From Laetmonice hystrix (lineage: Eukaryota): a stretch of 64,000 nucleotides of DNA. Both the position numbers and the translations under genes were made by a program. The notes beneath the pieces were generated by a model, which had not been told where the DNA came from, searched no databases, and was given only the letters and a program-made list of their open reading frames with translations. The DNA is taken from the NCBI GenBank assembly GCA_965235115.1, contig OZ249436.1, positions 65,596,001 through 65,660,000 on the forward strand, in the 5' to 3' direction. Shown in pieces: positions 25,686 to 57,369 of the stretch; within the stretch, counting starts at the first letter, position 1, and the number at the start of each line of letters is the position of its first letter.

Positions 25686-26039
25686 TATAACCTATATATA
25701 CTATGCCTAATCTATTTTGTACTATGTATATCCGAAACGTGTGTGTACGGGTTGGGGTGTGCGCGTCTCTTATAGGCCTCTAAATTGAATACCCTTAGTG
25801 ACACAATAAGGTTTGTCAGTTACACAGTTCGTTAGTTTTCTTCTGGTACTCCGGTTTGGTCACCATGACTTACCTCTCCGCAGACCCCCCCCCCCCCCCG
25901 ACACATACGCTATAAGATGTAGGCCTATACTTCCATCTCCAGTATCGCTAGATGGCGCCTGCAGAGCGCTACTACCGACGTCCCGAAATTCTAAAAATCA
26001 TATTTACATGCAGGCCTGTCTTCTCTGGACGACATCGTC

Positions 26040-26723
26040 TGGCCACAAAATACGGCACTCATTACAGAGGTGGGACACGTCACAGCCACACACCGACACT
26101 GACGTTACTCTCTGGCCACAAAATACGGCACTCGTTACAGAGGTGGGACACGTCACAGCCACACACCGACACTGACGTTACTCTCTGACCACAAAATACG
26201 GCACTCATTACAGAGGTTGGACACGTCACGGCCACACACCGACACTGACGTTACTCTCTGACCACAAAATACGGCACTCATTACAGAGGTTGGACACGTC
26301 ACAGCCACACACCGACACTGACGTTACTCTCTGGCCACAAAATACGGCACTCATTACAGAGGTGGGACACGTCACAGCCACACACCGACACTGACGTTAC
26401 TATCTGACCACAAAAAACGGCACTCATTACAGAGGTTGGACACGTCACAGCCACACACCGACACTGACGTTACTCTCTGGCCACAAAATATACGGCACTC
26501 ATTACAGAGGTTGGACACGTCACAGCCACACACCGACACTGACGTTACTCTCTGGCCACAAAATACGGCACTCATTACAGAGGTTGGACACGTCACGGCC
26601 ACACGCCGACACTGACGTTACTCTCTGACCACAAAAAACGGCACTCATTACAGAGGTTGGACACGTCACAGCCACACACCGACACTGACGTTACTCTCTG
26701 ACCACAAAAAAACGGCACTCATT
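26040..26723. repeat. 73-bp minisatellite, left arm (~9.4 copies)
   Basis: The unit is GGCCACAAAATACGGCACTCATTACAGAGGTGGGACACGTCACAGCCACACACCGACACTGACGTTACTCTCT. The arm breaks off after ...GGCACTCATT. Confidence 0.97.
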
Positions 26724-29700
26724 CCTGCTCGACCACCAAAGCTCCTTTATTAGGGGAGTGGCGGTGGCCTAGTGGGCATGGATGTCGACACCTTATGCTA
26801 TGCGAATGGGTGCAGTAATCTTAGGGCCTGGGTTCGATTCCTGTAGAGGACTATACAACTTTTCTCTTTAGGGACATTGTCAAAGTAATTGGGTTACCCC
26901 TGATGCCCGTGCATTTCAAAAGAAAAATACAGTCTACGCCAGTGCCAGGATTACCTTAACAGTCAATGTTCGGTAGAAATCATGTGTAGCTCTAACTAGG
27001 AAAATATGGATTCCGTCTCATTTAAAAAAGATGTGTGTAGGGGGGAGGGTCCATTGTCCTGCTCGACCACCAAAGCTCCTTTATTAGGGGAGTGGCGGTG
27101 GCCTAGTGGGCATGGATGTCGACACCTTATGCTATGCGAATGGGTGCAGTAATCTTAGGGCCTGGGTTCGATTCCTGTAGAGGACTATACAACTTTTCTC
27201 TTTAGGGACATTGTCAAAGTAATTGGGTTACCCCTGATGCCCGTGCATTTCAAAAGAAAAATACAGTCTACGCCAGTGCCAGGATTACCTTAACAGTCAA
27301 TGTTCGGTAGAAATCATGTGTAGCTCTAACTAGGAAAATATGGATTCCGTCTCATTTAAAAAAGATGTGTGTAGGGGGGAGGGTCCATTGTCCTGCTCGA
27401 CCACCAAAGCTCCTTTATTAGGGGAGTGGCGGTGGCCTAGTGGGCATGGATGTCGACACCTTATGCTATGCGAATGGGTGCAGTAATCTTAGGGCCTGGG
27501 TTCGATTCCTGTAGAGGACTATACAACTTTTCTCTTTAGGGACATTGTCAAAGTAATTGGGTTACCCCTGATGCCCGTGCATTTCAAAAGAAAAATACAG
27601 TCTACGCCAGTGCCAGGATTACCTTAACAGTCAATGTTCGGTAGAAATCATGTGTAGCTCTAACTAGGAAAATATGGATTCCGTCTCATTTAAAAAAGAT
27701 GTGTGTAGGGGGGAGGGTCCATTGTCCTGCTCGACCACCAAAGCTCCTTTATTAGGGGAGTGGCGGTGGCCTAGTGGGCATGGATGTCGACACCTTATGC
27801 TATGCGAATGGGTGCAGTAATCTTAGGGCCTGGGTTCGATTCCTGTAGAGGACTATACAACTTTTCTCTTTAGGGACATTGTCAAAGTAATTGGGTTACC
27901 CCTGATGCCCGTGCATTTCAAAAGAAAAATACAGTCTACGCCAGTGCCAGGATTACCTTAACAGTCAATGTTCGGTAGAAATCATGTGTAGCTCTAACTA
28001 GGAAAATATGGATTCCGTCTCATTTAAAAAAGATGTGTGTAGGGGGGAGGGTCCATTGTCCTGCTCGACCACCAAAGCTCCTTTATTAGGGGAGTGGCGG
28101 TGGCCTAGTGGGCATGGATGTCGACACCTTATGCTATGCGAATGGGTGCAGTAATCTTAGGGCCTGGGTTCGATTCCTGTAGAGGACTATACAACTTTTC
28201 TCTTTAGGGACATTGTCAAAGTAATTGGGTTACCCCTGATGCCCGTGCATTTCAAAAGAAAAATACAGTCTACGCCAGTGCCAGGATTACCTTAACAGTC
28301 AATGTTCGGTAGAAATCATGTGTAGCTCTAACTAGGAAAATATGGATTCCGTCTCATTTAAAAAAGATGTGTGTAGGGGGGAGGGTCCATTGTCCTGCTC
28401 GACCACCAAAGCTCCTTTATTAGGGGAGTGGCGGTGGCCTAGTGGGCATGGATGTCGACACCTTATGCTATGCGAATGGGTGCAGTAATCTTAGGGCCTG
28501 GGTTCGATTCCTGTAGAGGACTATACAACTTTTCTCTTTAGGGACATTGTCAAAGTAATTGGGTTACCCCTGATGCCCGTGCATTTCAAAAGAAAAATAC
28601 AGTCTACGCCAGTGCCAGGATTACCTTAACAGTCAATGTTCGGTAGAAATCATGTGTAGCTCTAACTAGGAAAATATGGATTCCGTCTCATTTAAAAAAG
28701 ATGTGTGTAGGGGGGAGGGTCCATTGTCCTGCTCGACCACCAAAGCTCCTTTATTAGGGGAGTGGCGGTGGCCTAGTGGGCATGGATGTCGACACCTTAT
28801 GCTATGCGAATGGGTGCAGTAATCTTAGGGCCTGGGTTCGATTCCTGTAGAGGACTATACAACTTTTCTCTTTAGGGACATTGTCAAAGTAATTGGGTTA
28901 CCCCTGATGCCCGTGCATTTCAAAAGAAAAATACAGTCTACGCCAGTGCCAGGATTACCTTAACAGTCAATGTTCGGTAGAAATCATGTGTAGCTCTAAC
29001 TAGGAAAATATGGATTCCGTCTCATTTAAAAAAGATGTGTGTAGGGGGGAGGGTCCATTGTCCTGCTCGACCACCAAAGCTCCTTTATTAGGGGAGTGGC
29101 GGTGGCCTAGTGGGCATGGATGTCGACACCTTATGCTATGCGAATGGGTGCAGTAATCTTAGGGCCTGGGTTCGATTCCTGTAGAGGACTATACAACTTT
29201 TCTCTTTAGGGACATTGTCAAAGTAATTGGGTTACCCCTGATGCCCGTGCATTTCAAAAGAAAAATACAGTCTACGCCAGTGCCAGGATTACCTTAACAG
29301 TCAATGTTCGGTAGAAATCATGTGTAGCTCTAACTAGGAAAATATGGATTCCGTCTCATTTAAAAAAGATGTGTGTAGGGGGGAGGGTCCATTGTCCTGC
29401 TCGACCACCAAAGCTCCTTTATTAGGGGAGTGGCGGTGGCCTAGTGGGCATGGATGTCGACACCTTATGCTATGCGAATGGGTGCAGTAATCTTAGGGCC
29501 TGGGTTCGATTCCTGTAGAGGACTATACAACTTTTCTCTTTAGGGACATTGTCAAAGTAATTGGGTTACCCCTGATGCCCGTGCATTTCAAAAGAAAAAT
29601 ACAGTCTACGCCAGTGCCAGGATTACCTTAACAGTCAATGTTCGGTAGAAATCATGTGTAGCTCTAACTAGGAAAATATGGATTCCGTCTCATTTAAAAA

Positions 29701-30271
29701 AGATGTGTGTAGGGGGGAGGGTCCATTGTCCTGCTCGACCACCAAAGCTCCTTTATTAGGGGAGTGGCGGTGGCCTAGTGGGCATGGATGTCGACACCTT
29801 ATGCTATGCGAATGGGTGCAGTAATCTTAGGGCCTGGGTTCGATTCCTGTAGAGGACTATACAACTTTTCTCTTTAGGGACATTGTCAAAGTAATTGGGT
29901 TACCCCTGATGCCCGTGCATTTCAAAAGAAAAATACAGTCTACGCCAGTGCCAGGATTACCTTAACAGTCAATGTTCGGTAGAAATCATGTGTAGCTCTA
30001 ACTAGGAAAATATGGATTCCGTCTCATTTAAAAAAGATGTGTGTAGGGGGGAGGGTCCATTGTCCTGCTCGACCACCAAAGCTCCTTTATTAGGGGAGTG
30101 GCGGTGGCCTAGTGGGCATGGATGTCGACACCTTATGCTATGCGAATGGGTGCAGTAATCTTAGGGCCTGGGTTCGATTCCTGTAGAGGACTATACAACT
30201 TTTCTCTTTAGGGACATTGTCAAAGTAATTGGGTTACCCCTGATGCCCGTGCATTTCAAAAGAAAAATACA
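26724..30271 (+). mobile_element. Tandem array of ~10.6 identical 334-bp units carrying a Pol III (tRNA-type) internal promoter; putative tandem retroelement or rolling-circle product
   Basis: Unit starts fall at 26724, 27058, 27392, 27726, 28060, 28394, 28728, 29062, 29396, 29730 and 30064 (constant 334 bp). No differences were seen between the copies compared. Each unit has an A-box, a B-box and T4. The tandem structure is certain; the mobile-element class is inferred. Confidence 0.7.
26758..26863 (+). ncRNA. Predicted ~105-nt Pol III transcript unit (tRNA-like, not a canonical tRNA), repeated 11 times at 334-bp intervals
   Basis: A-box TGGCCTAGTGG (26765-26775), B-box GGTTCGATTCC (26831-26841) and TTTT (26860-26863) are present. 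The acceptor stem does not pair (GTGGCGG vs AGAGGAC). Confidence 0.45.
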
Positions 30272-31028
30272 GAGGTGGGACACGTCACGGCCACACACAG
30301 ACACTGACGTTACTCTCTGACCACAAAATACGGCACTCATTACAGAGGTGGGACACGTCACGGCCACACACCGACACTGACGTTACTATCTGACCACAAA
30401 ATACGGCACTCATTACAGAGGTTGGACACGTCACGGCCACACACCGACACTGACGTTACTATCTGACCACAAAATACGGCACTCATTACAGAGGTGGGAC
30501 ACGTCACGGCCACACACCGACACTGACGTTACTCTCTGGCCACAAAATACGGCACTCATTACAGAGGTTGGACACGTCACAGCCACACACCGACACTGAC
30601 GTTACTCTCTGACCACAAAATACGGCACTCATTACAGAGGTTGGACACGTCACGGCCACACACCGACACTGACGTTACTCTCTGACCACAAAATACGGCA
30701 CTCATTACAGAGGTTGGACACGTCACGGCCACACACCGACACTGACGTTACTCTCTGACCACAAAATACGGCACTCATTACAGAGGTTGGACACGTCACG
30801 GCCACACACCGACACTGACGTTACTCTCTGGCCACAAAATACGGCACTCATTACAGAGGTGGGACACGTCACAGCCACACACCGACACTGACGTTACTCT
30901 CTGGCCACAAAATACGGCACTCATTACAGAGGTGGGACACGTCACAGCCACACACCGACACTGACGTTACTCTCTGGCCACAAAATACGGCACTCGTTAC
31001 AGAGGTGGGACACGTCACGGCCACACAC
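30268..31028. repeat. 73-bp minisatellite, right arm (~10.4 copies)
   Basis: The array resumes at (T)ACAGAGGTGGGACACG..., exactly the bases that follow GGCACTCATT in the unit. Confidence 0.97.
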
Positions 31029-31390: not shown

Positions 31391-32280
31391 GCCATCGATG
31401 TGGTTAACTACATTGTACCTTTGAATATCACAAGAAATACCTGGCTCATAAAGATATTCGGATGGGTGTCAGTCAGCGCTAACTTTGTGTTAATCACGGA
31501 GGTATAATATTGAAGTCTCCTGAGCTAAACCAAGCATCAAACTCATTTTTCGGTAATTGCTTCAATAGAGTCTAGTCAAGAGGAAAGGCATCAACTGACC
31601 CACACAGAACAGGGTCTAGTACTTCCTCTTTACCTCCGTTCTTTCTGTATTTCGTTTCTCAGAATTCATCTGTAGGCTATGTTCCAACTTCACATTGGAC
31701 TCGTAATACAGAAAAAGGTTTGCACACCCAATAACCTTCAAAGGAGGAAGGTATACCTTTCCAGCATTAACCTTTGCACCTCGTCGGTGTAGAGCAACCG
31801 TTTCGGTCTTCAATATTAATCTCATGTCCATGGCAGTCCCGCCACGGATTAAGGTTAACACTGTGTAAACAGATTAACATTGGACAGGACTTAAGCGATG
31901 ATCCACTGTGATTTGGATTCAACTTGTCGTAAGGAAGTAATCGATCATACTATCGATCATGGCTTTAAAAGGATGTAGGCCTAAACAACAGTCTATGCCC
32001 CGTGAGTAATAGCGCATTTAGTTATGCTTACATTTCTGTAACTGTTTTATTTTCGACAAAATTATTGAAACAGTATAAATAAAATTTCATGAAAGGTCAC
32101 TGAAATCTTATTCCAAATGAAGTCTATCAACTAATTGGAAGACAAGGAGTAATTTTGCCAGACATTCAGGCGACTAACTTGTCATTTAGATATTGACCGA
32201 CAGGTCTATGGATCGTCACTTCTAGAGGGGCTTTCAAGGTTCACTAAAATAATCAAAGGGAAGCCAGGAGTCTGGAGAGG

Positions 32281-33415
32281 GGTGGAGGTGTCGGTGGGGT
32301 GTTGGTGTGGGTGGGGTGTTGGTGTTGGTGTTGGTGGGGTGTTGGTATGGGTGGGGTGTTGGTATGGGTGGGGTGTTGGTGTTGGTGTTGGTATGGGTGG
32401 GGTGTTGGTGTTGGTGTTGGTGGGGTGTTGGTATGGGTGGGGTGTTGGTATGGGTGGGGTGTTGGTGTTGGTGTTGGTGGGGTGTTGGTGTGGGTGGGGT
32501 GTTGGTGTGGGTGGGGTGTTGGTGTGGGTGGGGTGTTTGTGGGGTGTTGGTGTTGGTGGGGTGTTGNNNNNNNNNNNNNNNNNNNNNNNNNNNNNNNNNN
32601 NNNNNNNNNNNNNNNNNNNNNNNNNNNNNNNNNNNNNNNNNNNNNNNNNNNNNNNNNNNNNNNNNNNNNNNNNNNNNNNNNNNNNNNNNNNNNNNNNNNN
32701 NNNNNNNNNNNNNNNNNNNNNNNNNNTGTTGNNNNNNNNNNNNNNNNNNNNNNNNNNNNNNNNNNNNNNNNNNNNNNNNNNNNNNNNNNNNNNNNNNNNN
32801 NNNNNNNNNNNNNNNNNNNNNNNNNNNNNNNNNNNNNNNNNNNNNNNNNNNNNNNNNNNNNNNNNNNNNNNNNNNNNNNNNNNNNNNNNNNTGGGGTGTT
32901 GGTGTTGGTGGGGTGTTGGTGGGGTGTTGGTGTGGGTGTGGGTGGGGTGTCGGTGTTGGTGGGGTGTCGGTGTGGGTGTGNNNNNNNNNNNNNNNNNNNN
33001 NNNNNNNNNNNNNNNNNNNNNNNNNNNNNNNNNNNNNNNNNNNNNNNNNNNNNNNNNNNNNNNNNNNNNNNNNNNNNNNNNNNNNNNNNNNNNNNNNNNN
33101 NNNNNNNNNNNNNNNNNNNNNNNNNNNNNNNNNNTGGGGTGTTGNNNNNNNNNNNNNNNNNNNNNNNNNNNNNNNNNNNNNNNNNNNNNNNNNNNNNNNN
33201 NNNNNNNNNNNNNNNNNNNNNNNNNNNNNNNNNNNNNNNNNNNNNNNNNNNNNNNNNNNNNNNNNNNNNNNNNNNNNNNNNNNNNNNTGGGGTGTTGGTG
33301 TTGGTGGGGTGTTGGTGGGGTGTTGGTGTTGGTGTGGGTGGGGTGTTGGTGTTGGTGGGGTGTCGGTGTGGGTGTGGTGTTGGTGTGGGTGGGGTGTGGG
33401 GTGTGGGGTGGGGGT
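32281..33415. repeat. G/T-only low-complexity repeat (GGTGTT/GGGT motifs) with masked N blocks
   Basis: Degenerate TTGGTG/TGGGGTG repeats are interrupted by N runs at 32567-32726, 32732-32891, 32981-33134 and 33145-33287. Confidence 0.95.
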
Positions 33416-34204
33416 CGCCAGGGTGGCGGTTATAACCGGCGGGTGAACAGCACCTCGGACCGGTAAGACAACCGGCATGTCGTTCGGACACTAATCTACT
33501 TACTAATGATGGATGCACTCAGAGGAGCGGCCGGCGTTATTTAAACGGCCCAGTCTATATCCACCATTGTTGTTGCTTCATGTTCATTCGATTTAGTGTT
33601 GGGCTGTTGGCTGAGCCGGACCTGACGGTCGACCGACGACAGGAGGATGACAGTCTAGATATAACAGCTGACCGCGGGGTTTTACAGAGAGAGGTCCTTA
33701 CAGAACGGATAACTCCGTTCTTATGGAGGCATTATGAATGGAAGTTGAGATGGATAACGAATTACTACATTATGCCTTCGGTCTTACAAAAGATAAATCG
33801 GTCCCTGGATATACAAACGTCTTTACACAGCCCACCCTCCAGCTTTTGTTGGGGGGGGGGGGGGGCACATTTTAACTACTGCATTGCGCATTCCCTTCTG
33901 ATGCTTTAACTATAGACCTACATATTATTAAATTCCTGTCCCCAGTCAGGTTTGTGAACAACACATAATGAATAAAATATATGGTGGATACGTAGTTTTA
34001 CTTCACACTTTTCCTTCATAATCACTCAAGTCGTTCAAAATTCTCACCCGATGCTCCCCCTACGATTTTCTGAATACACCACTGCTTTCGGCTACAAGAG
34101 ATGTCATCCCCGACTCTCGGTAACATTTCAATATGACCGCTCGTACTGAAATACCCACCGTTGGCAGGCCGCCGCCCATGTATATAGACAGCCGTAGGAA
34201 ATCC

Positions 34205-46660: not shown

Positions 46661-47323
46661 AATCTCATGGAATGGATAATGTCTTCCCTGTAAACTGACA
46701 AAACGGTAATTCCTGCCATGTCAACACACAAATGAATCTAAATCGTGGTTGAATGCATGAGTAGGTGCTGGGTAAACAGAAATGAATACGTGGCTCTAGC
46801 GTTTAGTCACTCTCCCATCCATACTGTAATAATAAACCCCTCCTTCCCTGACAGAATGGATCAGATTTAACTTCATCTTGAAAATTCCAAACTAAAACCT
46901 GAACGGAAATTCTGTATAGAATCATGCTCGCTGCCTGGAGGTTCTTATAACGGATTATATAAACGTATTGAAACAAAAAGGACTCCATGCTCATCTCTGG
47001 TCGACTGAGAACTCTCTCCGCTGGAAAACCAGGAACAATGAGGGAGACTACATGGTGCTTCTCGCGATTGGTCAACCCTCCAGTCCCGCCAGAGGGAGAC
47101 ACCTGTTTCTCGACGTCTGATTGGTCGCATCCTCTTGTGTGTTTAACCTAATGCACCATGTTTTTTAATGTATGTCCCATAAGAAATGCTTGTAATTTGA
47201 AACATGTTCCTTTTGCCGGACAATTTTCATTTGGAGAATAAGTAATATACCACGCAACAAAAAAATAGTCTACGAGGAAGGGGACACACGATAATTTGCC
47301 GAGGTATCCGGGAAAGGATATGT

Positions 47324-48314
47324 CACCAAGGATATTATCACCTGTAGAAGAGGTGAAGGGTTGGGTGGCACGTACTAACCGACAGGGAACACCAAGGATA
47401 TTATCACCTGTAGAAGAGGTGAAGGGTTGGGTGGCACGTACTAACCAACACTGAACACCAAGGATATCATCACCTGTAGAAGAGGTGAAGGGTTGGGTGG
47501 CACGTACTAACCAACACTGAACACCAAGGATATTATCACCTGTAGAAGAGGTGAAGGGTTGGGTGGCACGTACTAACCGACACTGAACACCAAGGATATC
47601 ATCACCTGTAGAAGAGGTGAAGGGTTGGGTGGCACGTACTAACCAACACTGAACACCAAGGATATTATCACCTGTAGAAGAGGTGAAGGGTTGGGTGGCA
47701 CGTACTAACCAACACTGAACACCAAGGATATTATCACCTGTAGAAGAGGTGAAGGGTTGGGTGGCACGTACTAACCAACACTGAACACCAAGGATATTAT
47801 CACCTGTAGAAGAGGTGAAGGGTTGGGTGGCACGTACTAACCAACACTGAACACCAAGGATATTATCACCTGTAGAAGAGGTGAAGGATTGAGTGGCACG
47901 TACTAACCCACACTGAACACCAAGGATATTATCACCTGTAGAAGAGGTGAAGGGTTGGGTGGCACGTACTAACCAACACTGAACACCAAGGATATTATCA
48001 CCTGTAGAAGAGGTGAAGGATTGAGTGGCACGTACTAACCCACACTGAACACCAAGGATATTATCACCTGTAGAAGAGGTGAAGGGTTGGGTGGCACGTA
48101 CTAACCAACACTGAACACCAAGGATATTATCACCTGTAGAAGAGGTGAAGGATTGAGTGGCACGTACTAACCCACACTGAACACCAAGGATATTATCACC
48201 TGTAGAAGAGGTGAAGGGTTGGGTGGCACGTACTAACCGACACTGAACACCAAGGATATTATCACCTGTAGAAGAGGTGAAGGGTTGGGTGGCACGTACT
48301 AACCGACACTGAAC
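47324..48314. repeat. Minisatellite, 66-bp unit, 15 copies
   Basis: The unit is CACCAAGGATATTATCACCTGTAGAAGAGGTGAAGGGTTGGGTGGCACGTACTAACCAACACTGAA. It produces the 22-aa-repeat minus-strand ORF 47148-48428. Confidence 0.97.
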
Positions 48315-51300
48315 CTCCCAGTGCGCCACGCAGGACATGGAAATGTACTTTGTCATGGAGGCGTGGGCGGCCAACATATGGATCTTGTCTTTCCCAGCCC
48401 CTGGCTTATGGAACCACAATGGACTCACAACACTCCAGAGCTAGGACAGATCGGGAACAATTCCTTGAAGGACTAGGGGGGGGGGGGGGGGTGAGGGGGT
48501 GTGGAGGCAACCGGAAGAAACTTTCCAATGACATGGAAGTGCAAAGGCAGAGGGCTGAGGAGGGAGGGCGGGTGGCTTCTTTAGTTTGTTGTATGTATTT
48601 CCAGTTGTTTGGGACCACACATGCGGTCGCTATACCAACAGGTTGGTGGAGATATATGAAGCCAGGCTGCAGGTACGTGCCAGGGTGTGGCCACGGGTTA
48701 CCGTCCTTATGTTCCTAGTGTACGCGGGTCCGAACTCATTGTGTCAACAGGTGGTTTGTGGCGGTCCCTCCCCCTCCCCCGAGCTGGCCCTACAGAGAGA
48801 CCTGCACAATAAGCCTGTGATACCACTCAGCTATCGAAACTTGAGTAGGTTGGGGGGGGGGGGGGGGACTCTCCGTTTCGACAATAGTTTTTGGAGTTAG
48901 GAGGTTCTTGAGGTGACCTTAATTATACTACCAACTTGGCCTATATTCCATCAAATCGACATTTCTGATAGCTTCACACTTTCTATCACAGGTTATTTTA
49001 ACCTTGCGCGTGCAGAAAATATCTGAGAGCATCTCTCACCTGAGCTATACAAGCCAAATAAACAAACCAAGCGAGCGCCTTCTACGTTCTCGACCACGAC
49101 GCAAGATGGTTTCCTACCCGTTGATTGGCCCACATGTGGTCCCCTGACCCGCTATCGTATTAATATTTTCCATCAACATGTGTGATTATGACCCTACAAG
49201 CGGCCAAGTTGTTTAGACTCCTAACAAAACGGAAACGATGCAAAATATATTGAATTACTATCCGGCACGTGCCCACGGCCACCGATCAAAGTCACGTGTT
49301 ATACACGCGGTAATCCGCGTTCCCCGCGAGATCGCCACGACCGTCCTGAGGGAAATGTTTGTCCACCGTACGACCATAAATCTGCAAGTTAGCCATTATA
49401 ATAAGTCTTACATCATTCCGTACAGAGCCTCCACTAATCTCATCAATAAAATATCCTCTTTCCACAAAGAAAGAAGAGCTTCGACTCCAATTTTGTTGGT
49501 CTTGGTTATTGTGAAACGTGAGAAGACACATCTCTCAGGGATGATACTCGTGCGAAATTGCCATATTATGTCAATAGTTCTTATGAACAACGGAACTCGG
49601 CTTTAGAGCCTGCATTCCGGTTCCGATGGCACGCTCATAGTGCCGTATTTTAGTTATCAATGAGTGACCCTTATATAGGATGGATGGCGCACTGGAGGGT
49701 CAATGTGTGTCTGTACATGAACCTTGTAGACATACCCAGCTTCATACACCGTGTATCACTAAATAAACAGATTGAGGAAGCATGTAGAGCTCCGGAAATA
49801 ATTCCATGGGTATTCTGTTAATCATGGCATTCCGGACCCCCCTCCTCCGAGTCACTTTTTCTTCATTACTAATTTCTGTCTTTCCTTTACTCCTATTGGA
49901 ACCCACATGTATACCCGCTTAGACTTTTTGTACATGCAGTATTAAATAGAGAACAAAATCCGGGTCTCTCCACCAACCCCATACTTGAGTTATCTGTGCT
50001 GTGCCCGAGTTGCACCGATCTCCATGGATAGAAACAGGGCAAAATTTCTGTACGGCACGAGTAGTTGAGGACTGACCTTTTCCAGAGGAAGCAACCCCTG
50101 AGGATTATCATACACCCTTAATGAGGATTCCCCAGGGGCGGGCCGTAGTTAGGCCAAGCAGATTTCATGGGAGGCAGGAGCATAATCCAATAGGCTCTAT
50201 TCAGAAATAATGATTGCCGAAAAACTCAAGAAAGGGCCTAAATATATTTTGGTGGTGGAGGTGGGAGGGGGGGGGGTAACATGTCACCCCTCTCTCGGCT
50301 ATACGGACACTGATAAAGGTATAGGCTAGCGGCCCGGGTTGGGAGTTGTGGGCCTACGTTTACCGATGGAGCTGGAAGCATTTAAACCTGCGAGATGTGG
50401 GCACCAGAGGCACCACGGGACCACCCCCTGCTGGGCCCTGAATTGGGGAGCGGCTGGTGGTCAGACGGGGCTGGCAAAGTGTACCTCCCTGTCCCGCCGG
50501 GACCTGCCAACCGTACGCCCCTTCTCAAAGTCCGCGTTACAGCATCATCAACGGGGCCAATCTAGTTGGTCCACCAAAAATGACAGGTTGTTTTCATCGA
50601 CATTCAGATGGAATTCGCAGAATTTTGATCTTGTTTAGATACCAACCAGAATGTAAGTATGTCCTCCAGCGGAACAACAAGTGGTTCCGGCCTCAGACTT
50701 CCGGTGGCAGGCCGGAGAACCCGCGTATGTTAGCAATCTACATGGAGGAATTATTTTGGTGACGTCCCTTTTCTAAGGGTTATTATTTAGACAAACCACA
50801 GAGACGGCGGCGTTCCATCTGCCTCTAACAATCCGACCTTGTTGGACTAAAATGCCCAAAGGATTCATATAAATAAGTCCGAAGATGTTTTGTTCGGTAC
50901 CGGCCAAGGTAGCAGAAAAACTTATTTACCGAACCCTGCCGAGGGCGCCTTTGGTATAATAGCGACGACTTCCCCCTGACTCGGCGGACCAAACAGAGAG
51001 TTGGAATAACAGCATTGAAACAACATTCGCAGTTGGGCTGTGAATGACTGAGAAAATAAACCAAACGGTCCTCGGTGCCAAGTTTGATTAATGGCCAGTC
51101 TACAACTCTGGCCACTTCTCGCGACGCTTCATGTATTTGCACACGTCGCCGTCAATGTCACGTGACCTTGAGATTAAACGCACCTCCATTAGAGCGTCGT
51201 AGGGCGCTTGGTAGCGACGTGGCTTGCACTGTGCCATGGAAATGACGTTGTCGTCAATTGACTATGATTCTTATCAGGCTTGTTAGTGACGGTCCACCCT

Positions 51301-53514: not shown

Positions 53515-56500
53515 CTCATCATTCATTTGGAATATCATGCGAGTATAGGTAGTCATTATAAAGGTGTAAAATTTACGTTCTGGAATGTCCAAAGTGTAAT
53601 GAACAAAATTGATAGCATTAGACTATCTCTGGATGACTTAGATACTGACATACTTTGTTTACAAGAAACCTGGCTTAGAAGAGAAATTAATGATTCTCTC
53701 ATAGCTCTACCCAACTATGCAATCTACAGAAATGACAGGAAAGCATTAAATGGTACAAAAAAAGGTGGAGGTGTATGCACCTATGTAAGAAAGAAATGGT
53801 CCATAACGCCCATACATGACGACAGTATAAATATCTCGAGTGACGATATTGAGGTCTTAGTTCTCAAACTTAATCTTAAATTTACTAAACAAATTTTCAT
53901 TGTTAATATCTACCGGCCTCCTTCGGGAAGTATTCTAAACTTCTTTACACATCCGGAAGCTATTATAGATTCTCTTACCTCTACGGCAGATTGTGAGCTC
54001 TACCTAGGAGGTGACATAAACTTAGATTATCTGAAACTGGGACGGCATAGGAGGAAACTTACTCACTTTGAAAACAGATACAACTTAAGGCAATTGATTT
54101 CAGAGCCTACAAGATTAGGTAAAATTGACTCTCTCCTTGATCATATATATATAAACAAATACAATCTGGCCCATCAGCATGGTATCATTACAGTTAATTT
54201 AAGCGATCACCTGCCTGTGTACCTTATCCGAAAGAAAACAAAAAACAAATATGAAAAAATTGAATTTAGAGGCAGAAGTTATAGAAATTACTCGGCCGAA
54301 ATATTCTCTGATAAACTAAGTCAGTTAAACTGGGCCTGGGTTCACGAACAAGTAAATATTAATACTACTGTTAGTTACCTGAATAATGAGATAAATACCA
54401 TATTAAACGAAATAGCTCCGATGAAGACATTTAAATTCAGTAAAACGAAACCGTTATGGATGTCCAACGAGCTGATTGAATACATGAAAGACCGGGATCG
54501 TGCGATGACCAGAGCAAAGAAAACAAAAAATCTAGAAGACAAGAAAACGGCGGCCCTCTTGCGTAATTATTGTAATAGGCTAGTGAGAAATGCTAAGGCA
54601 ATGTTTCTTAGGGAGAAACTTGAGCAGAACAAAAGCAATCCTAGGAAATTTTGGTCCCAAATCAAGGAAGTTTTTAACCCCGTTAATGAGTCAAATAATC
54701 TCACCTTACGGGACGATGCCGATGAAATAATATCACCTGACTTATTACCTGACGCTATAAATAATTTCTTCAAGGATATTGGCCCAAACCTAGCTAATAA
54801 GCTTGAGAAGGGCAGTTCAACGCCGCTGACAAATATAATACCCCTTCTAACGCCACCTATATCATTAAAACATACCACACGACCTGAACTTCTAAAATTA
54901 ATTAGGGAGATTAAAGTTTACAAGGCATCAGGCGATCCTCAAATCTCATCACGAGTATGGAAAGATCTCCTAATGGACAGGGCTGATGATTACTTAGAAA
55001 TTCTGAATAGGTCGATCGACACAGCGACCTTTCCTGACTGTTGGAAAATGGCGACTGTCACTCCCCTTCCAAAAGTACCCAACCCGCAACATTTTTCTGA
55101 ATTACGTCCAATATCTATCCTTCCTTTACCTGGTAAGATCCTAGAACGTATCGTACACAACCAACTTTACAACTGTATTGAATCGAACAACCTCATAACA
55201 ACGGTCCAAAACGGCTTCAGGAAAAAACATAGTACCACAGATACAATCTTTAAATTTTTAAATAACGTCTATAATGATATGAATGAAAATCGTAGCGCAG
55301 CTGTAATCTATATCGACTTCGCCAAAGCTTTTGACACGGTGGATCACACTATCCTTCTTAGGAAGCTAAGACATAATTTTAGATTTACGGAAAGTACTGT
55401 AAATTGGATAGCTAGTTACTTAAGTAACAGAAAACAGAGAGTTCTTTTAAATGGGAAATACTCAGACTGGCAAAATATCCTTTGCGGAGTTCCGCAAGGA
55501 TCCATTTTGGGCCCCCTGATGTTTACCTGTTACACGAATGATATGAGTAGTGTACTACAATACTCCCAAATGTACCAATTTGCGGATGACACCGCCCTCT
55601 ACAGATCAGACGTTAACCAAGCTCGGAACATTCACCTATTACAATTAGACTTAAACAACCTCGTAAACTGGTGTAACAACAATAAACTAACAATTAATAT
55701 AAACAAAACAAAGATTACACATTTTGGCAAAGCAAAACAGCTAACCCCACACTCGGAAATATCAATAAATAACAGACAGCTACAGCTTGAAAGGACCTAT
55801 AAATACTTAGGGGTTACAATAGATGCAGAGTTAAAATTTACTGACCATATCAACGATATGATAAAAAAATTAACTTACAAAAACTATATTTTTAAACGTA
55901 CCAGATATTATATGAATGATTATACTGCGCTAATAGTCTTAAAAACAATGCTACTCCCACTAGTAGATCACGGTAACATGTTTACCACTAGCTGTAATGC
56001 CGAAGATCTACAACGATTGGTAGTTCAATATAATAATGCCATAAGAATTGCACTAGGAGTTAGAAGCCCCAGGGATATTAGTACAACGGATCTGTATATA
56101 GCTGCAAAGGTTCAAACATTAGAGACGAAAAGATCGTACAATTCCTTATGTTGTGTTTATCGTTTACTCAACCTGTCAGACTTAAGTCTGTCGATTACAA
56201 ATGCAGGAACAAGGGCACAACAAGGCCCTCTTACGAGGTTAGCTACACCCAAATCTACATGGTATCTTAAATCACCTATTTTTACCGCCTTGAGGGCATG
56301 GAATAACCTACCAGTTACAATCAGGGTTCAAGACGATTATTCTACATTCAAAAAGCTCTTAAAAACAGAGCTATATAAACAATTCTAATATGACATTTGC
56401 ACTGTATTATAGGTGCACCCCAGTGACGCATAGGTCAGGAGAACAAATTACTTGTATCCTAGGTTCTAACTATCATCCCATCTCATTATTTCACCCATAC

Positions 56501-56673: not shown

Positions 56674-57369
56674 ATCTAAACGGTAGTGGTGCTAGCACAG
56701 AGTACCCTACATCTACCTATTCTGTGGTGCTAGTATATGTAGATATAGTACCCCTTGGCAGTTTGTAATAGGTTAATGTGGCCAAGTGGTTTCGGGAGGA
56801 CTGCATCAGCCGATAGAAAGAAGAGAAATAAGAGAGTTTCACTAAACGCTCTGTGATTGGCTAATAATCTAGGGACTTGTTTATCTCAGGCCACCACGAG
56901 GCACCCTGGGTGAAAACTCTCTTCTTGAAGGAGAGACCAACAGAATTCTCTCTTCGCCGAATCAAGAGGAGAAAACATGCGTGTCGAGCGGGTCGACTGC
57001 AGAGTCATCTGCGTGGTATAAATCTACTGGCTTCCTCTACAGTTCTCTCATTGACCCTCCCTAGTGCTCTACGATTGGGTCATCAAGAACTTGTTCAAGC
57101 ATCTCTTCTGCTGCTTGGCATATAAAAGTAGTCCTACCCTTACCATTGCACAATAAGAGCAGAGATTAAGTTCCAGTGACTGGTGGCTTTCTCACTTCAT
57201 TCTTATCATCATCTCTCCGATGGGTTTGAAAAGGAAAATACAAAAGAACTTGGTGAGGCACATGGGGTGTGGCGTTATGCGACGTATCTGTGGCATTTCT
57301 GTTTTACTCGTTGTCCCAATAAACCCAAGGTCAAGGTCATACTATACGACGCCATTACTATCATATACA

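Follow-up and report, generated by a model that had tools for sequence, protein, structure and literature searches.

Penelope-like elements (PLEs) show heavy 5' truncation and partial or multicopy tandems (pseudo-long terminal repeats, or pLTRs), they insert into microsatellites and other repeats, so that target site duplications (TSDs) cannot be seen, and some of their families lack canonical hammerheads (Craig et al. 2021, PMC8557442). Non-autonomous PLE derivatives have their 3' ends in common with an autonomous element, and one of them, MRC1, was first described as a non-autonomous long terminal repeat (LTR) element (PMC8557442). A PLE protein has been found to cut both strands and, on a multi-copy RNA, to begin reverse transcription at a site within it (Frangieh et al., PMC11167929). 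The metazoan non-LTR retrozymes consist of tandem monomers of ~300 bp, have a type I hammerhead as their defining feature, and have been proposed to be copied by a rolling circle and to depend on PLEs (Cervera & de la Peña 2020, PMC7229834; Li et al. 2026, 10.64898/2026.07.22.740005). Here, we describe a 334-bp tandemly repeated unit found in a 64,000-nucleotide stretch of the Laetmonice hystrix genome (GenBank assembly GCA_965235115.1, contig OZ249436.1, positions 65,596,001 to 65,660,000; this whole stretch is referred to as the window). The unit is probably a non-autonomous, ribozyme-free, retrozyme-like PLE parasite that targets TACAG-bearing minisatellites and carries a head of the RNA polymerase III (Pol III) type.

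Tandem Repeats Finder (TRF) reported a 334-bp period between positions 26723 and 30272 of the window, with 10.6 copies, 100% matches, and 0% indels, and a 73-bp satellite on either side of this array (26038 to 26723 and 30268 to 31028). The host satellite reads ...CACTCATT^ACAGAGGT... at the array and resumes with (ACAG)AGGTGGG after it, indicating that the host repeat is continuous in register. We take the window array to be a single insertion, of very recent date, of a retroelement that is small and probably parasitic. An initial annotation, made from the letters of the window alone, had parsed the array as R(I-R)10, where R (27055 to 27265, TGT...ACA) was taken for a terminal repeat and I (26932 to 27054) for the internal part of a mini-LTR element. 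All of the landmarks that it used could be located in the sequence, namely, R, I, the purine tract AGGGGGGAGGG at 27039 to 27049 upstream of R, a final R copy that stops ...ATACA at 30271, the A and B boxes, and a T4 run, and its proposal that a small non-autonomous retroelement multiplies here as concatemers survives. The parse itself was correct on one side only: a terminus that truly recurs exists at the right end (ACA/ACAG), whereas the left side is arbitrary, as the start of the array at unit position 3 is one of many 5' phases in the genome, 61 scattered ones among the complete insertions.

The genome, of 627 Mb, is in 35 contigs, and when it was searched with a single unit, 232 matches were scored; at 99 to 100% identity, they came from dozens of arrays spread over many contigs. 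Exact-pattern counts were 4,473 for the 22-nt 3' tail, 2,158 for the internal R-to-I junction, and 1,014 for the element-to-host junction ACAGT[C/G]AGG, which translates into roughly 2,000 insertions that together have about 4,500 units, a mean of about two units each; the 10.6-unit array of the window lies at the long end of the insertion-length distribution. We mapped each unit in 34 loci fetched in addition to the window. Without exception, the 65 independent 3' junctions fell at unit position 206 to 220, ...AAAAATACAG(TC). By contrast with this constant 3' boundary, the 5' phase of the 61 insertions for which both ends were available was uniform (Kolmogorov-Smirnov test, P = 0.50; chi-square test, P = 0.22), and 5' starts seemingly at position 1 were BLAST artefacts, the alignments running a few bases further upstream. 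These complete insertions ranged from 54 to 4,888 bp (0.16 to 14.6 units), with 20 of them shorter than one unit.

The host bases that follow ACAG are mostly T, C/G, A, G, and G. The favourite target is a minisatellite of ~33 bp, ...CCTAATCACT^ACAGTCAGGTGGGGTATA...; further targets are ...TACAGTGAGGCC... and ...ACAGTGA(G/T)GGCTCCC... repeats, and the 73-bp satellite of the window is another, ...CATT^ACAGAGGTGGG.... The left host flank stops within a few bases of the same target site, and the orientation of the element relative to the target is constant, also where the minisatellite itself is inverted. The element homes to TACAG-containing minisatellites. TSDs are absent in most insertions and measure ~4 to 6 bp (ACAGT) in some. 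A fixed 3' end, random 5' truncation, and microhomology are together the signature of target-primed reverse transcription (TPRT), not of LTR integration. Contigs from public sequencing runs follow the same rule, with unit position 214 leading into one minisatellite unit and then into another copy at any phase. The unit occurs in public runs of two organisms, several marine metagenomes, and one aquaculture metagenome. Run X4 (organism B) contains a self-closing 364-nt contig of the unit that carries 29A, as in the window array, and has no differences over unit positions 3 to 240 (compared with window 26723 to 26960); a similar self-closing 364-nt contig in the marine-metagenome run X5 has one differing letter in its first 68 nt.

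Several individual loci deserve mention. At L062:1759-3206, an insertion lies between apparent 31-bp direct duplications of the satellite target (...GAGGGCTCCCTACATGTATTGACTGC). At L061:1376-4768 and L042:4016-5358, successive 33-bp minisatellite units each have their own short 5'-truncated insertion, a sign that one target is re-used to an extreme degree, and one that prompts the question of whether minisatellite growth is aided by long TSDs. At L057:1350-8764 (C18:8004.3-8011.8 kb), a 2,090-bp block composed of two insertions and minisatellite spacers has been duplicated in tandem three times, the variants being identical, and is a segmental higher-order repeat made from insertions. Finally, two other transposons with terminal inverted repeats (L031:560-2159 and L031:2836-3920) are nested in a 334-bp array, with duplications of unit sequence at their edges (TGTA and the 7-bp GTAGCTC).

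A candidate partner was found in the same genome. A Pfam GIY-YIG search yielded 124 hits, mostly inside one open reading frame (ORF) of 759 amino acids (aa) that occurs in head-to-tail tandems of up to seven, spaced at ~5,581 bp (e.g., at C7:18340041-18374328 and C21:23120155-23170389). An exhaustive protein search returned homologues of 740 to 763 aa with a C-terminal GIY-YIG domain, one of which (P0003) also matched RVT_1, at 26.9 bits, below the 29.6-bit cut-off. By the criteria of PMC8557442, these features would mark a canonical PLE with a C-terminal endonuclease (EN) of the Neptune/Nematis kind, as judged by protein features. At least 284 candidate PLE loci have a common 3' end position, and some are 5' truncated. 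One such truncated copy, L057:160-1258 (C18:8003159-8004257), has an ORF with the GIY-YIG domain (E = 1e-8) and shares 97% identity with no fewer than 40 scored copies among the 284 candidates. Its left flank ends ...gccctaatcact, and its right end, ...AAAACACAG, is followed by gaaggtgg; in this one PLE junction that was read, the site (...ctaatcact^), the 33-bp minisatellite, and the orientation are the same as for 334-bp insertions. An Rfam search of this PLE fragment gave a chance small RNA (sRNA) hit only. A second GIY-YIG family, with ORFs of 789 aa, forms clusters near contig ends (e.g., C6:5237, C17:28026, and C2:22011), a location that is possibly subtelomeric.

The unit and this PLE have similar 3' tails. 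When the unit was aligned to both strands of the 1.1-kb PLE fragment, the best local match joined the last ~110 nt of the PLE to unit 153 to 217 on the same strand, with a score of 22 versus 12.1 ± 1.4 for shuffled sequences (0 of 500 reached it). The shared region is roughly 60 nt, lies within the PLE 3' untranslated region (UTR), and includes a box, CCTGATGCC[A/C]GTGCATTT, that is conserved in 18 of 19 positions between the two tails. Their termini are alike as well (AAAACACAG in the PLE versus AAAATACAG in the unit), and the A-to-B box order of the unit has the same polarity as the PLE coding strand. In combination with the fixed 3' end and the 5' truncation, the similarity to a PLE 3' UTR points to TPRT by a PLE, not to LTR-type integration.

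In these properties, the unit resembles the non-autonomous PLEs, such as the non-autonomous Chlamys families and MRC1 of Chlamydomonas (PMC8557442). It has no ORF, a constant 3' end with 5' truncation, 3' similarity to an autonomous PLE (seen with one copy), pLTR-type or multicopy head-to-tail insertions, repeats as targets, which make TSDs hard to recognize, with the preference of the PLE (seen at one junction), and no canonical hammerhead. It differs from the Chlamydomonas elements in its animal host; in its partner, which would be a C-terminal-EN PLE with a linker and CCHH-type cysteines (Neptune/Nematis-like) and not an N-terminal-EN Chlamys; in its target, (T)ACAG(T)(C/G)AGG in minisatellites in place of (CA)n, (C)n, or (TA)n; and in its tRNA-type A and B boxes.

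The distribution of sequence variants among arrays bears on how the concatemers arise. The window array has 29A in 11 of 11 units, whereas 29T is found in those other young arrays examined that are without the 29A/304C markers. Both copies of L046 carry 54T, 165C, and 253A, and both copies of L035 carry 294A and 305G; likewise, both copies are alike at L037 (239G), L038 (204T), L039 (30C), and L034 (277C), while an additional A at 198 is present in 4 of 5 copies of L062. Overall, 23 variants are found throughout their array, 5 in some of its copies, and 27 in a single copy; two positions, 29 and 304, mark subfamilies, and the other variants are rarer. Variants common to all units of an array suggest that one monomer is copied reiteratively per insertion. 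Because linear copying with 5' truncation would only shrink arrays, and a new mutation would never fill one, some step must multiply a single unit at or before insertion. Rolling-circle copying of a circular RNA and homology-driven template switching on an RNA of 1.x units are the candidates for this step. The hammerhead core CUGANGA occurs on neither strand of the unit, and 2.7 units searched on both strands with Rfam models (ribozyme and tRNA models included) had no match at E ≤ 1. With no known ribozyme, no CUGANGA, and no excess RNA structure, a self-cleaved circle in the style of retrozymes is unsupported. A viroid-like rod was rejected, folding of either strand giving z about 0, as was a circle made by back-splicing, for which the unit was reasoned to be too small to house an intron.

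The metazoan retrozymes are nevertheless close in form. Like them, the unit has ~300-bp monomers, occurs as dispersed tandems from dimers to tens of copies, and shows no evident LTR, primer-binding site (PBS), or polypurine tract (PPT) logic; its 334 bp fall within the 150 to 450 bp by which retrozyme monomers in dispersed tandem repeats are recognized. Unlike them, it has no type I hammerhead and no excess structure, and it carries a Pol III-type head instead.

With regard to that head, the tRNA-type Pol III boxes claimed by the initial annotation are present, with one exact A box and one exact B box in each unit. There are 11 exact copies of each in the array, versus 0.67 (A box) and 0.25 (B box) expected in the whole 64-kb window. 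ARAGORN found no tRNA gene in the array or the window, and the unit head contains no tRNA cloverleaf detectable by ARAGORN or Rfam. In the majority variant, 29T, a T6 run occupies unit 26 to 31, and this run is broken to TTTATT in the window array. The T6 run lies just upstream of the expected Pol III start; thus, a transcript that reads through the weak T4 run would be nearly exactly one unit long. A T6-bounded, unit-length transcript is suggestive only, and the variant in the window itself breaks that run.

We propose that the 334-bp unit depends for its mobilisation, in trans, on an autonomous PLE in the same genome, one that encodes a reverse transcriptase (RT) as well as a GIY-YIG endonuclease at the C terminus. 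A sense RNA of the unit, possibly transcribed by Pol III from the A and B boxes, would be recognised by the PLE protein through the shared 3' tail, including the conserved CCTGATGCC[A/C]GTGCATTT box. The PLE endonuclease would cut ...T^ACAG(T)(C/G)AGG..., which is abundant in several minisatellites, and the cut bottom strand (...CTGTA-3') would pair with UACAG in the RNA, priming reverse transcription internally. The RT would then copy one unit repeatedly, whether by means of a circular template or of homology-driven template switching, and stop at random, so that the resulting concatemer would be fixed in its 3' phase and random in its 5' phase. TSDs would be absent or irregular because both strands would be cut at or near one place. 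The fixed internal start at UACAG fits the internal initiation reported for a PLE by Frangieh et al. (PMC11167929).

A number of observations weigh against this proposal. The RNA of the unit folds with no excess structure (z, -0.26 and -0.07), no RNA run contains the unit, and the T4 run, 19 nt past the B box, would end many Pol III transcripts short of the tail. The tail similarity comes from one PLE copy and its 3' 1.1 kb; beyond the 18/19 box, it is moderate, and the PLE tail is ~21 nt longer than that of the unit. Moreover, the start site in the PLE of Frangieh et al. (PMC11167929) has no homology to the target, whereas microhomology is the rule here.

If the proposal holds, short satellite-like arrays are sown genome-wide by a retroelement rather than by recombination, in about 2,000 insertions, many of them 99 to 100% identical. 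It would also extend the PLE-dependent concatemer elements (retrozymes and MRC1-type elements) to a hammerhead-free animal form, and it bears on whether such elements need ribozymes. This would be a very young, homogeneous, and target-specific system in which to study how PLE RTs choose their initiation site and form tandems, its components being the 759-aa protein, the 334-nt RNA, and a defined target of 33 bp. A more ambitious version, which we put forward tentatively and consider doubtful as a whole, is that the unit represents a new class of animal short interspersed element (SINE): a Pol III-transcribed element with a tRNA-type promoter that parasitises a PLE and not a long interspersed element (LINE), forms ribozyme-free concatemers from a single unit-length template (a circle or a T6-bounded, terminally redundant RNA), and targets minisatellites by UACAG base-pairing at the cut site. 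The literature that we searched contained no report of a PLE-dependent element with tRNA-type boxes and nothing specific on PLE-dependent tRNA-SINEs or tRNA-derived satellite arrays.

Among other explanations, the one that fares best, though it is improbable, is that the arrays are multimers of an ordinary tRNA-derived SINE, mobilised by an APE-type LINE with a shared 3' tail and 5' truncated during TPRT. The unit does have A and B boxes ahead of a tail common to an autonomous retroelement and 5'-truncated copies, as tRNA-derived SINEs do; a fixed 3' end with random 5' truncation is a LINE hallmark too, and LINEs occur in this genome. One of them, in the window at 53527 to 56388, has an intact-looking 953-aa ORF (APE endonuclease plus RT) and a poly-A run near 56,700. 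This LINE was rejected as the partner, since it does not resemble the unit and ends in a poly-A tail. The unit itself has neither a poly-A nor a microsatellite or other simple-repeat tail, its sole detected tail relative is a PLE 3' UTR and not a LINE, and that PLE uses the same target site. Multicopy head-to-tail insertion is, in addition, typical of PLEs and not of LINE/SINE pairs, and the ~150 nt from the 3' end to the next head, as well as a head that does not fold as a tRNA, sets the unit apart from tRNA-derived SINEs.

Two DNA-level explanations are both very unlikely. In the first, a Helitron/HUH-type rolling circle would copy a 334-bp circle from a fixed nick (minus-strand 5' end CTGTA...) and terminate at random. 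One fixed and one variable end, concatemers, and target-specific insertion without TSDs would all follow from it, and array-wide variants fit a circle. The insertions, however, lie at T^A, not at A^T or T^T; TC...CTRR ends are absent and the 5' end varies; near the 3' end there is only a 4-bp stem and no convincing hairpin; and the tail is homologous to a retroelement 3' UTR in sense orientation. No Rep/helicase partner was seen, and none was sought. Helentron-carried arrays of oyster (PMC7492417) are likewise short, satellite-like, and scattered through euchromatin by a mobile element, but they are internal to an element with left and right flanks, whereas the 334-bp array abuts host DNA directly and is 5' truncated. 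In the second explanation, a satellite would spread by extrachromosomal circles that are amplified by a rolling circle and re-inserted through microhomology at breaks in fragile minisatellites. This would account for the 3'-junction microhomology, for homogeneous arrays, and for the location of the insertions in tandem repeats. Repair of random breaks nevertheless predicts random phases at both ends and both orientations, while the 3' end is always at unit 206 to 220, the orientation is constant, and about 2,000 insertions obey one junction rule. Integration of a Crypton/DIRS-type circle was rejected by reasoning, as it would give whole numbers of units that start and end at one phase.

The mini-LTR (TRIM/Cassandra-like) element of the initial annotation, an R-I-R unit that builds LTR-internal tandem arrays, can be dismissed almost entirely: R starts with TG and stops with CA in the window array and has a purine tract ahead of it, but the breaks in other copies across the genome fall at unit phases that are unrelated, which that annotation had itself named as refuting evidence, and because these 5' breaks scatter over all unit phases, the TRIM/LTR model is refuted. 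Among the mapped copies, R does not recur as a TG...CA-bounded block with 4- to 6-bp TSDs, since only the 3' boundary is constant, many insertions are below R length, and the TSDs are not regular duplications of that size (the apparent one in L062 being 31 bp). A plus-strand PBS is not evident, with no tRNA genes to compare it against. Like the plant TRIM/Cassandra elements, the unit is small and non-coding, has a Pol III promoter, and can form repeat-internal-repeat strings; unlike them, it has no defined LTR boundaries, regular TSD, or evident PBS, its promoter is of the tRNA type and not the 5S type, and its insertion has the marks of TPRT and not of an integrase. Reading the 334-bp array as a mini-LTR is the same misreading as that of MRC1, and it carries a warning for annotation, namely, that an array with an R-I-R look can be a pseudo-LTR artefact produced by insertion of the PLE type.

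Table 1. Features of the 334-bp array and of the flanking host satellite in the window
Feature	Position in window	Strand	Basis
One element insertion of 10.6 head-to-tail 334-bp units; 5' truncation at unit position 3, end at unit position 212 (...ATACAG)	26723-30272	+	TRF, 100% identity; blastn unit map
Reference unit, source of all unit coordinates (1-334)	27055-27388	+	blastn map
A box TGGCCTAGTGG, unit 45-55, recurring each 334 bp to 30105-30115	26765-26775	+	11 exact matches
B box GGTTCGATTCC, unit 111-121, recurring each 334 bp to 30171-30181	26831-26841	+	11 exact matches
T4 run, unit 140-143, in each unit; possible weak Pol III terminator	26860-26863	+	T-run scan
PLE-like 3' tail of last unit, unit 147-212, terminal ...AAAAATACAG	30207-30272	+	Local alignment with PLE 3' UTR of L057
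Conserved box CCTGATGCCCGTGCATTT in 3' tail	30239-30256; first copy 26899-26916	+	Local alignment with L057 PLE
3' junction, TACAG common to element and host satellite (microhomology)	30268-30272	+	Same junction type in 65 independent insertions
Host 73-bp satellite, left half, ending ...CACTCATT	26038-26722	.	TRF
Host 73-bp satellite, right half, resuming (ACAG)AGGTGGG in register	30273-31028	.	TRF

Two other repeats were noted in the window. Fifteen copies of a 66-bp repeat (97% alike) lie at 47148 to 48428 within a 426-aa minus-strand open frame. A degenerate G/T-rich repeat at 32234 to 33518, with periods of 17, 40, and 57 bp, has long open frames on both strands, which are probably a composition artefact.

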